Assembly (NCBI GenBank): GCA_904063045.1 | Contig: CAJFCJ010000003.1 | Coordinates: 1,612,001 to 1,676,000 of the forward strand | DNA length: 64,000 nucleotides | Reading direction: 5' to 3' | From: Dimorphilus gyrociliatus | Taxonomy: Eukaryota > Animalia > Annelida | Shown here: one piece after another, positions 57,350-64,000 of the stretch | Layout: every line of letters begins with the position of its first letter | Position numbering within the stretch: position 1 is the first letter of the stretch | Made by a program: the position numbers and the translations under genes | Notes under the pieces: model-generated | Told to the model about the DNA's origin: nothing | The model's database searches: none | What the model saw: the letters and a program-made list of their open reading frames with translations, nothing else

Positions 57350-59000
57350 GATCTCAAAATATCTCCTCGAACCGTGAATTATATAATGATTCTTTTATGA
57401 ACCTTTTCATATGCAATGAATAAAAAATCTTTGACGGGTACAGCGGGTAGCAGGCAATCTGCGGTCATATTATTCAAATAAGTTTGTATGACACAATAAA
57501 GATAAAATAGTATTATTGATGCAAATACGTTTTTGGTATATATCGGATGACAATGATAATTTAGATTTAGATTACTGATTTTCTTTAATGTTTACTCTGG
57601 TATAAGCGAGTCGGTTGACGAAAAGAATACCAACAGAATCGATAATACTTATAAGCAAGTATTCCACTTAATTGGGAATTAAATTAATTTTATAGTAGAC
57701 TTGATTAAAATAAGAAATTTTAGCAGCATTTCCTTATTCGCCTCAAGTTATGATTCAAGATTTGTTGAATTAAAATATAATTTTATTCTATAAAGAAACT
57801 ACATGTTTTAAATGTTATCTAAAAAACATTCACACTTGATAGATTCTGACTAATTTGTTTTTATAGTGATCATCACTTGCAATTCGATTTGATCCATTTT
57901 TTCTTTTATCACCCTTTTAAATATTTATAATAAATTCTTTCCGGATTGTATGATACTTAATGGATTCACAAATAATTCCGCTAAATTTACTTTCGTTTTC
58001 TTGTTAACTTGACGGAAAAGTTCAGTTGAAAAACGCAAAGAATATTTGTATACTAATTTATTACTCAAATATAGCTTTTATTTATGTTGAACTGACTGCT
58101 AAAGATAACTTTGAATTCTTAACTTTTGACTTTTTAAGCTCTGTAAAAACATTACGAAAGAGCTTCCTGACTAAGGAGCCTCGTTGATTATTCTAAAATT
58201 GACTCTAAGTAGCTCATTTCCTGAAATTAAGATACTACTACGCCCTTATTACAGTGGTAGAATAATACTTCTCAAATCGCTGTATGCTAAAAGGCATTTA
58301 GTACTCGTTAATGATGGAATACAGTCGGTTTGAGAATGTTTAAATTCAGAAGCGCTTAAACTTGAAAAGATAGAATCCCTTTGGAGGTTTCTAAGTCATT
58401 TATACGTACTAAAAATAATCCTTTCGGCAGTGCTCAATTACGAAAGAGCTGTGAAGCAATTGATTGATTTCTGTGATTCGTAATAGTTAACTATCTTATA
58501 ATACAAATGGTCTCAACTTTCTGTTACTTGTCTTTTATGTCAAGGAAAAATACAGCAACTGAAAAATTTAACCATTTATGTAGATCACGAGTCAGTAAAT
58601 ACTTTTATTGCAAGAAATAATGTTAATTACAAAGTCTTCCTATTGTTATTCATGCAAACGGTATTTTATTAATTTAATAAACTTTTGCTGGTTACAAAAA
58701 CTTTTTATTCATATTTCAATGCAATCAAATTACTATATATAAAACATAAAAAATTTTCTCCGCTACTAAAATCTCGTATATGATTAAATGAATCTTTTGT
58801 GATATTGTTAAAAAGGTTTACTTGAAAATGTGCTTTTTAATTACAGTTAATTTCCTGCAGAAAAAGCGAGTGGGACTTGATACTTTAATAAGAATATTCG
58901 AAGCACTTTTAGTGATATATCTCCTTCATATCTTATAAAGTTGATGACATATTTTGCTCAAGTTAGATGCGCCAGTTTCTTAATAGAATTTTATTATAAT
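57350..59000 (-). pseudogene. Second decayed LRR(-membrane protein) remnant
   Basis: Fragmentary LRR-like peptides with stops and frameshifts: LKVLRI, NDLET/PKGF, SDLRSIILP, ILISGNELLRV, LQSLKSQKLRI; then hydrophobic fragments VLSILLVFFSSTDSLI and VFASIILFYLYCVI. Confidence 0.28.
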
Positions 59001-59275
59001 TTCGTTTCGTCCATGAAAGAAGTTTCTTGAATGTAGGCTACCAAAATACGAGATGCTTTTGTATCTGCTATAAGAAGACATAGATGAAAAGAAATCAGGA
59101 TCGTAACGGACTTAATAAGTATTTTTCCTTGATGCTCTATAACACTCTCATCCATCATACTAAATTGTCATTTATCACTCTAATTCAAATAATTAGTCAG
59201 AAATTATGTTTAGATTTTATTGAGACGCTGGACACGAGGTTTTCAGTCATTTAGAATCAGTGGAACAGGAAGGTA

Positions 59276-60238
59276 ATGCTTTTTTTATGCTTCTCAGCTA
59301 TTTTCGTCTGCCTTGGATTCGCAGCTAAAGGACAGGTGGAATTTAAAGAGCAAGTTGTGGTTGAGCAGGTTTTAGAAAACTGCAAATCAGCTTGCATCTT
59401 ATCGAGACCTATAAGAGATGCGAAACAAAAAGTTACTGTTGAAATGATGATTAGGTTGGTTGAAATTATTGATGGAGACCCTAAACTTGGAGAGTTTACA
59501 TTAAGATTGGCAGAGGATTATGTAATATTTTGAAATAAAAATATTTAACTTTCTATGAATTATCCTGATTTATCTATTTTCTATTAACGTATTTTAGTCT
59601 TGGATAGATTCAAGGTTATCGTGGCCAGATTCGGATGTTGATATGATCAGCCTTCCTGATAAGTATATCTGGATTCCTGATATTAAACCCAACAATTGTA
59701 GGTAAATGTAAAAACTAAAAAGTTAAGCTGCAATTAGAAATTGCCTTTGTGCACTTCACTTAGAATTTCGTATGATTCTTATTCGGCTGCATACCGTTCT
59801 CATCCAGCGAAGATAAAAAGAAATGGAAGCGTTCATTGGAGTAAATATCGCCTTATGAAGGTATAACAATGACATCTGCAGTTAAATACATGTTTACGTT
59901 ATGAACATCTTTTTTGCAACAGAGTATATATTTATTTTGTATTATAGTAAATTATAATTTTTCAGGTGAAATGTAAGTTCGATAGATCCAAACCAGTATT
60001 AACGAACATGTATGCATGTACAATTATTTATTACTCATCAATTTGGAATGCTAATCAGCTAGACGTAACTTCTATGACGAACTCAATAACGAAACATGTT
60101 GATTACGTAGAAAACTCTTTTTGGAACCTTAAGAAATTAGGTGCAAAAATAATACATTATAGAGATAAATGCTGTAAGGATTTATTTGTCCTAATTAATG
60201 TAACTTTTCATTTTACACATGCTTCTTATTTTGTGTAA
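59276..60238 (+). CDS. Cys-loop (pLGIC) extracellular ligand-binding domain protein, acetylcholine-binding-protein-like, ~239 aa; 4 exons
   Basis: Exons 59276-59521, 59598-59701, 59764-59860 and 59966-60238 join in frame. Signal peptide; RPIRD..VTVEM.I.LVEIIDGD; SWIDSRLSW; IWIPDI; NGSVHW; Cys-loop CKFDRSKPVLTNMYAC; DYVENSFW; loop-C vicinal CC (YRDKCCKDLF); stop immediately after beta10/pre-M1. Confidence 0.88.
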
Positions 60239-62702
60239 GCATGTATTGCAATAGACGCAATAGAAACTATTGTGCTATAGTATAGAAAAGCGTTATCGTA
60301 TTTCAAAATTTATTATTTCGAATAGAATGAGCAGTAAACATAAAAAGATTGGTATCATCTTTGTTTTTCTCTTTGTTGCGCTCACATTCAATGAAGAGTA
60401 ATCTGACTTCTTTCTAGGGAGTACATCTTAGCATTTCTTCAAATATTTCCTTCTCTTCCGGTCATTTTGAGATGAGAAAATATGAAAATACTTGTTCGAC
60501 CTTAAAACACACTTATCCTTTTAAAAGAAAATTAATAGAAATGAAAAAATGAAACATAATAAAGTACTGAGGCGGAAATAGAGTCAATACTCTTTCTTCA
60601 TTTTTAGTTTTTCCAGATGCACATTATAACAGGTTGATCATAATGTAAAAGTGGAATTTAAAGTATCGACACGTCTTCCTAGAATGATAAATATGAAAGA
60701 GTTATTTTAATTTCCACCATTATTATTTATTTAATTAGATATCAAGCTGTGGGATTTCTGTCGGGATATTTCAAATATGCTGTAAAGGAAGATAAATAAT
60801 ACATTATTGATGTGAGGGATTAGCAAAGATAATTGTAGGTATATATTTATATGTTTATCCGCCTCCACCTTGTTATCCCTTCAGAATAGCACAACCACAA
60901 AAGTTCCCAGAAGACAGACAAAATTTCTCAGCATGCTACTTATAGTATGAACAATGTCGTGTGAGGAATAAAAAAAATTACGAGTCGCAAAATGAGGGAG
61001 ATATGCCCTATTCTGTTTCGTTAGTTAGGGAAACGTTGCTGTCGAACCGATTTATCTCTGAAATGTAGCAAAATCTTAATACGGACAAAGGTCCAGACTG
61101 TACTTCTAAGGAGAATTGCTCCCCAAATACCAATCCTCGCAATGGAAACAGTTCCCTTTGTAAAGCCTCGGGCAAATTCTATATTTCATTAAAAAATTCT
61201 ACAGAAGTATCAAGAATATGAGAATATGTAAGAGACTTTTAAATTTTTGTTCTCGTCTGGATTTTAGTAGGTATTTTTATTGAGGTTGATAAGGAATATT
61301 CCTGGAAATTAGTTTCTAAATAAGCCGCTGGGGGGAATAAGTATAAAGTATAGCCCCTAATCTTTGTTTGACTTCCGAATCGGCTGCGTTAAAAGACAGC
61401 CAAATAACCCTTAGGAGAACTATTTTGACCAGAGAAAACACACAAAGAGTTAAGAGAAGATTTAGTGTAAATCGTGAATACTGCTACATCATTGCTGATA
61501 AAATTCAATATATGAATAAATTAATTTCTTAAAGATAAATGTAGTGCTTTGATTTCCCTTGTCTACCGTATGAATTCCATAAATTCGAATCCATCTAAAT
61601 CCCGAGTCAAAAAAGAATAAATAAATAAATTTAATTCCTTATCTTTAGCTCATTACTGTTTACCATCAAACTTCTTTGATATATAACGAGGTTATAGTTA
61701 AATTTAATGACTTGCTAGAAGAAGAATATGGTCCATAGAACAACACCGAAAGTTAATTACAACACTAATAATTGTAAAATATGTATGAATAACGTTACTT
61801 TTAGGAAATATAGTACCTCATAGATTCATATCCTATATTTTACATTTATTTTTAAATTTAATAAATCTCTCGCGAAAATACTTCAAATGATTCTGATTAT
61901 CCGATGAAAGTTTTCATACTATGACAAATAGCATTCGATCGCTACCATGTTATTACTTCAATTAGAAAATTGAAGCTGAGGATAGAAAATTCACACGGTT
62001 CGGAATAGAAAGATGATATGGAAATAGATAAACGCCATTAGGTGTATTACTATGATCTTAGAAAGACATAAAGAAAAGTTACATTTAAAAATTTTTAATT
62101 AAGTAATCAATTATGCATGATTTGTGCATTGAATACCTAATAAAAATAACTAGTATTCTGTTTGATATAAATGCGGGATACCCTCCAGTAAGCATATATG
62201 TCGTAAATACACTTCACATATTATATATTCGTATAGTAAGCATTAATAAAACTGTTAAATATATATATGAACAGCAATATATATATATTCAGTATATATG
62301 TATATTGTATATATTATCGTATTTATATATACAAATACTAGAACAATGCATAATCTATATTAATAAAATTTCGTTTAGAAATATTTCAATGATCATCAAT
62401 AGTTTTCTTAACATGCAAATGATATGATATATGTGAGGGGAAATTCGATAAAAAAACGACGCTTCTTTCGATCGTCAATACCAAAGAGTCTATACGGAAT
62501 ACATAGGCCTATACCAGATGTGTCCTATAGGCCTATAATAAATAATGCAACGCTCTCAAACGTAATGCGCTAATTCAGAGGGTTGCATATAAAAGTGGTA
62601 TTCAGTTTATCTTTGTACCAGTTTAAATGATATCATATGATCGATTCTTTATCTGTCTGATAATAATATAAAAATAATGAGCAATAGATAGCGCTTTATT
62701 GA

Positions 62703-62716
62703 GCTCCACCTAGCGG
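62703..62716. promoter_or_regulatory. CTCF-like motif
   Basis: GCTCCACCTAGCGG (reverse complement CCGCTAGGTGGAGC). Confidence 0.45.
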
Positions 62717-63599
62717 TAAATATACCAAATCATTTAAGACTACGCCGAGAGGCGTGAAAAAAAGCTATAAAATAGAATAAGCTTTTCACGTTAAATAGTT
62801 CAAATCAACTTCTATAGTCGATCATAATGAACAATCATCGGAAGAGGCATGCCCATTTCCAGTGTCTCGTTTCTCTACGATATCTATTTCATTCGTTGTT
62901 TTGTCTGTGAGATATAGTGGCTCTTCTAGACTAGAGATAGCTACCTAACATTCATATTTTGTATGCCCCTTCACTTCACCAAACAGAAAAGAACCCTAGA
63001 GAATAGTTTCTTCCATCTTTTGAATAAAAAAGATAATATGAACTGACAATGTCAGGAAAATTTTAAGTTTCATTTTCATATTATGAGATGTTAGCCTCAT
63101 TTCAATCAAATTTAAATGAATTATATATCAACCAATATCTATTGAATTCTTTCGTAACTTATTGATTATAAAATAACAAGTGGGGAAAAGCCTTTTCCAG
63201 TTAACTTTCATAGTAAGTATTAAGTATCTCTTTTACTACTTTCGAAGTCTTTTTTATATAATAAAATCTGATGTAAACGTTTAACATTTTTGGGTAACTT
63301 TTGCTCAATCAATTAGTAAATACTGTCTCCTGTAAAAGGAAATGTTTTGAAGTTGATGCTGATTAAAATCTAAATTAGAGATGCCACAAGATTAAACTAG
63401 TATGATATATTATACTTTAGTAAACCTTAAGTATAATTATATTCCGGAGATAACGCCGCTTATTTTAACGGTGCTAAAAACCAATATCTTTCATGTCTTC
63501 ATCTTAGTTGAAACAGTACACACGCAGATTATGTTTTGAAATATATCAAAGCTCATTCCTCTTTTTTTTCCTAGTTATTCGTTCTACAGCATTAATATT

Positions 63600-64000
63600 T
63601 AACGACTGTCTAGAAGAGCCACTATCTTCCCTTTTATAACAACGTCCGGTATATCATCTTCTAGAATCCAATCTCCGTTGTCGTCGAACTTGTCGTTTTC
63701 ATCCGGTTCGTCCCAAAACGGCAAACGCAGAATTAGACCGGTTACTACTCCACCCAAGATAGCGATTCCTAGTGTTACAAAGATCGCAGCAAGCTGATAG
63801 AGAGCTTGAGAAGAAGCGGATCTGCCTGATCCGGGCTCGATCAGGTAGTCCTAAATAGAAATATATCGTGAGATCTCGAATGTATAATGTTATTTCATAT
63901 ACTTACTTCATTTGTTAAATTAGATTTTAATATACCTTCTACTGGTGCTCGAGATGGGTAGATTATATAGAGTCTGTAGACATTTTACAGGGGGATTTAC
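63600..64000 (-). CDS. Rh-type ammonium transporter (Rh50 / RHAG-RHBG-RHCG family), last two exons; rest outside window
   Basis: Exon 63973-63908 LYIIYPSRAPVEGILKSNLTNE, intron 63907-63851, then DYLIEPGSGRSASSQALYQLAAIFVTLGIAILGGVVTGLILRLPFWDEPDENDKFDDNGDW...LDSR*. This is the typical Rh last TM helix and FDD..W tail. Confidence 0.88.

Follow-up and report, generated by a model that had tools for sequence, protein, structure and literature searches.

An expressed, probably secreted nicotinic-type ligand-binding domain with a largely non-aromatic pocket in the annelid Dimorphilus gyrociliatus

Acetylcholine-binding proteins (AChBPs) are the standard soluble models of nicotinic receptor pharmacology, and, to our knowledge, all well-studied members keep the aromatic box. 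What is then to be made of a protein that has the architecture of an AChBP and little of its aromatic box? This question is raised by a locus in a window of 64,000 nucleotides, i.e. the whole stretch of DNA analysed here (contig C3, positions 1612001-1676000), of the genome of the annelid Dimorphilus gyrociliatus (78 Mb, 32% GC). The gene lies at window positions 59276-60238 on the plus strand (C3:1671276-1672238); all bare positions below refer to the window, and its features to the plus strand. An initial annotation, made from the letters of the DNA, had described a signal peptide followed by the extracellular domain (ECD) of a pentameric ligand-gated ion channel (pLGIC), with an aromatic cage largely lost. 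Our analysis points to an expressed and lineage-specific gene, whose product is probably a secreted, ECD-only protein devoid of the classical cholinergic box, forming rings and binding another ligand than acetylcholine. This protein type, a secreted ligand-binding domain (LBD) without a channel, is already known; the novelty, as read from the alignments, is the loss of four out of five pocket aromatics.

Is this gene correctly delimited, and is it transcribed? The coding part consists of four exons, every coding intron being of the GT..AG type, with phases 0, 2 and 0 by sequence reading. Once joined, the exons form a 239-codon open reading frame (ORF) with no internal stop, whose product is identical, letter for letter, to CAD5113066.1 (DgyrCDS2260, UniRef A0A7I8VB13); the public annotation thus already lists the gene, as the unnamed protein DgyrCDS2260. 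Coding exon 1 (59276-59521, with the ATG at 59276) encodes residues 1-82, including the signal peptide, the N-terminal helix and strands beta1-beta2. The predicted signal peptide, MLFLCFSAIFVCLGFAA (residues 1-17, 59276-59326), was recognized by eye as a hydrophobic N-terminus, its cleavage site being putative. Exon 2 (59598-59701, SWIDSRLSW...IWIPDIKPNNC) carries the loop A region and ends in phase 2, exon 3 (59764-59860, ...NGSVHWSKYRLMK) carries the loop E region, and exon 4 (59966-60238) extends from the Cys-loop to the C-terminus (...TFHFTHASYFV) and the TAA stop at 60236-60238.

The RNA evidence consists of contigs from one public run (X1), whose type is not on record; these contigs carry spliced joints and are therefore RNA. 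One spliced contig of 1268 nt, made of pieces 58847-58961, 59020-59521, 59598-59698, exon 3 and 59964-60338, displays four GT..AG joints (58961>59020, 59521>59598, 59698>59761 with the cut at +3, and 59858>59964 with the cut at +2), and proves all three coding introns, together with one intron of the 5' untranslated region (UTR), corresponding to the first of these joints. The four-exon model of the initial annotation, including its borders and frames, is thus borne out by spliced RNA, the 239-residue ORF and the transcript agree with its description of a signal peptide followed by an ECD only, and the absence of expression that would have indicated a pseudogene is contradicted by the data.

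Does the encoded protein belong to the nicotinic type? The whole protein matches the Pfam profile PF02931 (Neur_chan_LBD) with 77.4 bits (cut-off 26 bits) and an E-value of 1.3e-21, over profile positions 15-212 of 216. Only weak Pfam matches are obtained with exons taken singly, as with exon 2 (LBD positions 56-87, E 1.9e-4); exon 4 corresponds to LBD positions 139-212. When PDB sequences are searched with HMMER, the best matches are the beta2, beta4, alpha2, alpha4, gamma, alpha9 and alpha7 subunits (E 1e-11 to 1e-8), and no AChBP chain is present among the best 60 PDB matches, except the engineered alpha-subunit/AChBP chimera 4zjs. Designed TIM barrels of the PDB, also matched by exon 4, were rejected as repeat-driven chance matches. 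At the structural level, the AlphaFold2 model, for which an alignment of 40 rows was used, reaches a pLDDT of 85 and a pTM of 0.81, and Foldseek ranks first the alpha7/alpha9 extracellular domains (22% identity) and Lymnaea AChBP (Ls-AChBP, 15-18%), with TM-scores by target of about 0.8 and E-values of about 1e-16. The ESM Atlas model of the same protein has a pTM of 0.79, and its nearest clusters contain LBD-only proteins of 230-250 residues, mostly molluscan. A nicotinic-type beta-sandwich fold with an N-terminal helix is confidently predicted by these models. Close orthology to described AChBPs, which the initial annotation had considered as an outcome opposed to its own proposal, was not found in the PDB and Foldseek comparisons.

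The residues that are retained belong to the scaffold, namely W84, D86, L89, W91, W107, P109, D110, G138, W142, C152, C167, W202, C218 and C219. The mature chain has a predicted pI of 8.95, two N-glycosylation sequons and seven cysteines, and therefore at least one unpaired cysteine. The additional cysteines initially noticed in the motifs NCKSAC and NNC were recovered as Cys36, Cys40 and Cys116 (59697-59699).

The binding site is where the protein departs from its relatives. The register was established by an HMMER comparison with human beta2 together with three MAFFT alignments, which all agree, and which reproduce the three substitutions reported initially: the loop D Trp is replaced by Ala79 (59510-59512), in a column that is Trp in 93% of the relatives, the loop A Tyr by Asn114 (59691-59693), and the loop B Trp by Ser174 (loop B, 60038-60046), in a column that is Trp in 100% of the aligned relatives. 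Two loop C changes can be added (60158-60187), since the same alignments place Asp216 at the Tyr position of the Y-x-C-C motif, just after Tyr214, and Phe223 at the second Tyr position. Ala79, Asn114, Ser174 and Asp216 leave four of the five positions of the box without an aromatic residue, the fifth being Phe223, and the description of a largely lost cage therefore holds. The vicinal cysteines of loop C are retained, as had been reported (Cys218-Cys219, 60170-60175), and would form a disulfide. The Cys-loop (Cys152..Cys167, 59972-60019) was also correctly described: it has 14 residues between its cysteines, versus the usual 13, and no F/YPFD motif. More generally, the motifs that couple the ECD to the membrane domain are gone, with FPFD replaced by PVLTN and the pre-M1 Arg replaced by His234. 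A residue is shared by 70% or more of the relatives in 55 columns; 25 of these are kept and correspond to the scaffold, and 30 are changed and concentrate in the binding pocket and in the channel-coupling elements.

Could the protein nevertheless bind acetylcholine, through a pocket re-registered around Trp176, Tyr214, Phe223 and the vicinal disulfide? Such a functional AChBP would account for the preserved Cys218-219 pair, and aromatics do occur two positions away from those lost in loops B and C, Trp176 being located two residues after the canonical loop B Trp and Tyr214 two residues before the canonical loop C Tyr. AChBP sequences are, in addition, highly variable, with 16-36% identity among themselves (PMC3423370). 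However, the register of loop B is fixed by two anchors, Cys167 and NQLDV, which leave Ser174 in the invariant Trp column, no nearby aromatic substitute is found for the loop A Asn and the loop D Ala, and the seven reconstructed paralogues from the same genome (7/7) all keep the loop A Tyr, the loop B Trp and the first loop C Tyr. A persisting cholinergic function is consequently quite improbable, and the reading that we favour is that classical acetylcholine binding would have been lost, the protein acting as a soluble binder of some other ligand.

Does the protein really end without a channel? The stop codon overlaps, as pointed out in the initial annotation, a donor-like GTAAGC (60235-60240), and splicing from 60235 to an acceptor at 60281 or 60326 would, from the sequence, append ...KKIGIIFVFLFVALTFNEE. 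The RNA contig is unspliced through the stop, the donor-like site and both candidate acceptors, up to 60338; since it is continuous over all of them, the assembled mRNA encodes the truncated protein, and the donor-like site is unused in the assembled transcript. The acceptors and the single hydrophobic stretch that had been deduced from them do exist in the sequence, whereas the membrane-tethered isoform is not represented in the contig, a type of assembly that drops rare splice variants. Likewise, splicing into TM exons, which would have indicated an ordinary receptor subunit, was not observed in the contig, which reads through the 60235 donor.

The four-helix transmembrane (TM) domain expected of a channel subunit (PF02932, Neur_chan_memb) is absent, the stop being located where M1 should start. 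Genome-wide Pfam profile scans detected at least 170 LBD exon matches and at least 162 TM-domain exon matches in D. gyrociliatus, with no PF02932 match listed near C3:1.672 Mb; such numbers in an annelid also make pointless the remark of the initial annotation that the gene would be more surprising in a placozoan. Six-frame ORFs in 60239-63600 and in the 10 kb beyond contain nothing resembling M1-M4, and Pfam finds no domain of the pLGIC family in the larger ORF pieces located downstream. A tblastn search with 327 ORFs from 30 pLGIC loci of the same genome gave consistent matches in the coding region, which served as a positive control, and scattered noise downstream, with no TM remnant in 60239-63600. 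The profile search for Neur_chan_memb recommended by the initial annotation thus listed no TM-domain match before the next gene. Taken together, a membrane protein, produced either as a minor isoform gaining one hydrophobic segment through the 60235 donor or by means of distant TM exons, is the least probable of the explanations considered and very hard to sustain: the donor-like site and its in-frame acceptors are real, would add IGIIFVFLFVALTF, and could be used in variants too rare for the contigs, but the transcript is continuous from 59964 to 60338, no Neur_chan_memb signal follows, and a highly transcribed stretch, probably belonging to the neighbouring gene, lies only some 1.8 kb away.

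The gene is flanked upstream by a methyltransferase gene and downstream by a convergent gene for an ammonium transporter. The stretch 62033-63900 is heavily transcribed, with a contig depth of 250-670 versus about 20 for the gene studied here, and probably corresponds to a long 3' UTR belonging to the ammonium-transporter gene, on the minus strand. A joint at 62904>63631, which skips 726 nt, ends in CT..CC and has a short side of 28, could represent an intron of the minus strand, unless it is artefactual.

Where does the protein come from? Orthologues were sought in several ways. A phmmer search with exon 4 against 1.84 billion representative proteins and a word-indexed search with the full protein both returned only the protein itself, and two profile searches, whose length window left out full-length receptors, recovered, besides ordinary nicotinic fragments, other ECD-only proteins, all of them at 28% identity or less. 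Within the genome, searches with coding exons 1 and 4 (the largest two), taken singly, gave no paralogue better than E 0.09. In maximum-likelihood (ML) trees, the end branch amounts to 4.5-5.2 changes per site, when the median of the family is about ten times shorter. Judged from these comparisons, the protein is extremely diverged and lineage-specific.

Its genome of origin nevertheless contains a family of AChBP-like genes, with at least eight members located at C93:18000-21000, C66:101800-104800 (and C194), C117:12000-15000, C58:14800-17800, C9:2199800-2202800, C145:14500-17500, C49:27800-30800 and C229:14500-17500, to which a pseudogene can be added (C155:18000-21000, with in-frame stops). 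The C66 and C194 copies score identically and may be haplotigs, and the C229 locus is partly masked (N). In this family, the Cys-loops are short (C-x8-12-C), the loop A Tyr, the loop B Trp and the Y-x-C-C motif are all intact, and the stop comes a few residues past beta10; the last exon begins at |V[KR]C in phase 0, as does exon 4 of DgyrCDS2260 (|VKC). In the seven paralogues that were reconstructed, as joined partial models used for local alignment and for the tree, the second loop C Tyr is kept in six and replaced by Phe in the seventh, loop D being outside the reconstructions. The presence of at least eight canonical AChBP-like paralogues, as identified by these sequence features, makes the ECD-only architecture itself not unusual in this genome.

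The phylogeny called for by the initial annotation gave a divided answer. The free ML tree groups DgyrCDS2260 with the AChBP-like genes of the worm (support 97/94; top identity 27%, with the C66 copy), but an approximately unbiased (AU) test does not reject a placement among ordinary receptors (p 0.53), both results being obtained with trees that include no named molluscan or Capitella AChBP sequences. The gene would be either a fast-evolving offshoot of the AChBP-like family of the worm or a separate truncation of a receptor gene, and the data do not decide between the two origins. A further scenario, in which a Gln codon ending an ancestral exon would have mutated into the stop (an intron follows FY[IV]Q in two paralogues), was dropped, as the AChBP-like paralogues end there without it.

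DgyrCDS5640 (C7:203715-204361, minus strand, 164 residues) ends in ...RRKSEFYVQ+VYF*, its last three residues resembling the read-through of a GTATAT donor after FYVQ, and an intron interrupts the locus at C1:2358386 at this same FYIQ| position; the annotation of DgyrCDS5640 is probably a truncated receptor model, and not an ECD-only gene. At least two more clades of proteins made of a signal peptide and an LBD only, with modified Cys-loops, were observed in the trees, one including the springtail Orchesella and the other lying beside alpha7-type subunits. Nicotinic subunits thus seem to have given rise to proteins without a channel several times in animals.

Is such a divergent gene still under selection, or is it simply decaying? 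The main rival explanation is that of an expressed relic without function, i.e. a duplicated AChBP-like or receptor gene that drifts, in which the loss of the box would reflect decay and not a new specificity. Several observations are compatible with it, namely the tenfold longer end branch, the change of 30 out of 55 conserved columns, the failure of protein searches to find an orthologue, a 5' UTR rich in upstream ORFs (uORFs), and the existence of at least one clear pseudogene, that of C155, in the AChBP-like family. However, neutral drift over 4-5 changes per site in a genome with 68% AT would bring stops, frameshifts and broken splice sites, none of which is present; the changes are moreover non-random, the residues of the fold and both disulfides being kept and the binding and coupling positions altered, and the sequence folds confidently in two predictors. 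Selection is supported because the ORF and the splice sites remained intact after 4.5-5.2 changes per site in an AT-rich genome, because the scaffold was selectively kept when pocket and coupling positions changed, and because the fold is confidently predicted. A drifting relic therefore appears rather unlikely, and a functional secreted protein remains the reading that we favour.

The transcript upstream of the coding region deserves a closer description in this respect. Its 5' UTR is 448 nt long, contains seven upstream ATGs, and is spread over three exons. The first one (57578-57654, with an approximate 5' limit) accounts for 77 unplaced letters at the 5' end of the contig, the last 30 of which are unique to 57625-57654; the second (58847-58961) corresponds to a contig piece ended by the 58961>59020 joint, and the third (59020-59521) holds the remainder of the 5' UTR (59020-59275), followed by coding exon 1. 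The first intron (57655-58846, 1192 nt), deduced from the 5' end of the contig, would use a GC donor, with GCAAGT after 57654 and acag before 58847. A 56-codon uORF (59084-59254) stops 21 nt ahead of the main ATG and may repress translation. On the other side of the gene, the 3' UTR covers at least 60239-60338, with an AGTAAA at 60333, low-depth contigs reach about 61064, and an AATAAA occurs at 60558; one low-depth contig bears an 'opposite strands' joint at 60465-60508, probably an assembly or hairpin artefact.

How would such a protein work? The signal peptide would direct the secretion of an ECD-only protein, whose subunits would then assemble head-to-tail into a ring via the usual interface. 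In a three-copy structure prediction, the ipSAE is 0.54 versus 0.32 for the best control, which counts as a pass, the partner pLDDT is at least 73, and the runs share at least 71% of their contacts. The pass mark was calibrated on two copies and not three, and was reached by 21 of 30 proteins whose solved structure is a pair of one chain and by none of 23 solved as single chains. The predicted contacts involve residues 38-50, 88, 110 and 174-175 of one copy and residues 21-33, 95-105 and 130-133 of the next, and the modelled interface is the usual head-to-tail one, with the loop A/B side of a subunit facing the loop E side of its neighbour. As to the ligand, the initial annotation had put forward a secreted decoy or carrier for a non-cholinergic ligand, a role that remains conjectural. 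A narrower proposal is that of an 'orphan AChBP', i.e. a secreted ring whose pocket selection would have adapted to a new ligand, either a small molecule or a peptide, non-cholinergic in nature and possibly anionic or hydrophobic; we regard it as a tentative suggestion, with a limited chance of being correct in all its details.

Several points weigh against a secreted, ring-forming binder. Secretion, oligomer and ligand are all matters of prediction or deduction, and no orthologue was recovered in the representative-protein and profile searches. The oligomer passes by a narrow margin (+0.22 for a mark of +0.20), with three copies where the calibration used two, and this pass may reflect a memory of solved pentamers in the predictor. 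The odd number of cysteines in the mature chain (seven) leaves at least one of them unpaired, and RNA support comes from the contigs of a single run of unrecorded type. Translation may be weak, given the long 5' UTR with its seven upstream ATGs and its 56-codon uORF. Finally, a new aromatic pocket could be built from Trp176, Tyr214 and Phe223, which adjoin the lost positions.

What would be gained if the protein were such an 'orphan AChBP'? It would offer a soluble, crystallisable model of how lophotrochozoan nicotinic-like proteins gain new ligands. As a small soluble member of the group that has the fold, the loop C disulfide and the self-association surface, it would be easy to express and to screen for ligands of the derived pocket. 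The genome itself provides the contrast, with at least eight canonical AChBP-like paralogues on one side and one strongly derived copy on the other. If the gene drifts without function, it would be a mere curiosity of a fast-evolving family.

How does this protein compare with known systems? AChBPs have been described from molluscs, from one annelid (Capitella teleta) and probably from a spider; their Cys-loops vary in length, and their sequences have little identity to one another (PMC4569296, PMC3423370). Like the AChBPs of Lymnaea, Aplysia, Bulinus, Biomphalaria and Capitella teleta, DgyrCDS2260 consists of a signal peptide and a pLGIC extracellular domain only; it ends a few residues past beta10, has a Cys-loop of non-canonical length without FPFD, and carries the vicinal loop C cysteines. 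It also shares with AChBPs the predicted fold (TM-score by target of about 0.8 to Ls-AChBP) and a predicted self-association. Unlike them, it has four non-aromatic positions out of five in the box and a predicted pI of about 9, and it is less similar to Ls-AChBP (15-18% identity) than to alpha7/alpha9 (22%), nicotinic subunits outscoring AChBP chains by sequence.

Another soluble paralogue of the AChBP type is ACCBP, the amorphous calcium carbonate-binding protein, found in molluscs (Pinctada, Haliotis) and endowed with a mineral-related, non-synaptic role (PMC3423370). The two proteins are alike by description, and differ in that ACCBP takes part in shell formation in molluscs, whereas D. gyrociliatus has no shell; the mineral surface listed among the possible ligands in the initial annotation has no basis in such a worm.

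The nicotinic-like genes of lophotrochozoans are greatly expanded, some of them being orphan or answering non-cholinergic chemicals, according to a survey that took in D. gyrociliatus sequences (PMC10338036); our literature search found no paper on DgyrCDS2260 or on the AChBP-like genes of this species. The Alvinella receptor Alpo4 and the cephalopod chemotactile receptors, as cited in that survey, are, like DgyrCDS2260, lophotrochozoan nicotinic-like proteins whose ligand site departs from the cholinergic signature, and which are orphan or have a non-cholinergic ligand; unlike it, they are full channels with TM domains (PMC10338036). Alpo4 keeps the aromatics without the CC pair (PMC10338036), DgyrCDS2260 having the opposite pattern and no channel. 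A last comparison is offered by the AChBP-like family of the worm, with which DgyrCDS2260 shares the ECD-only organization, a last exon beginning at |V[KR]C in phase 0, the W.DSRLSW motif and a stop one to three residues past the RRK position; unlike these genes, which have a C-x8-12-C Cys-loop and keep the loop A Tyr, the loop B Trp and the loop C Y-x-C-C, it has a C-x14-C Cys-loop and has lost these aromatics.

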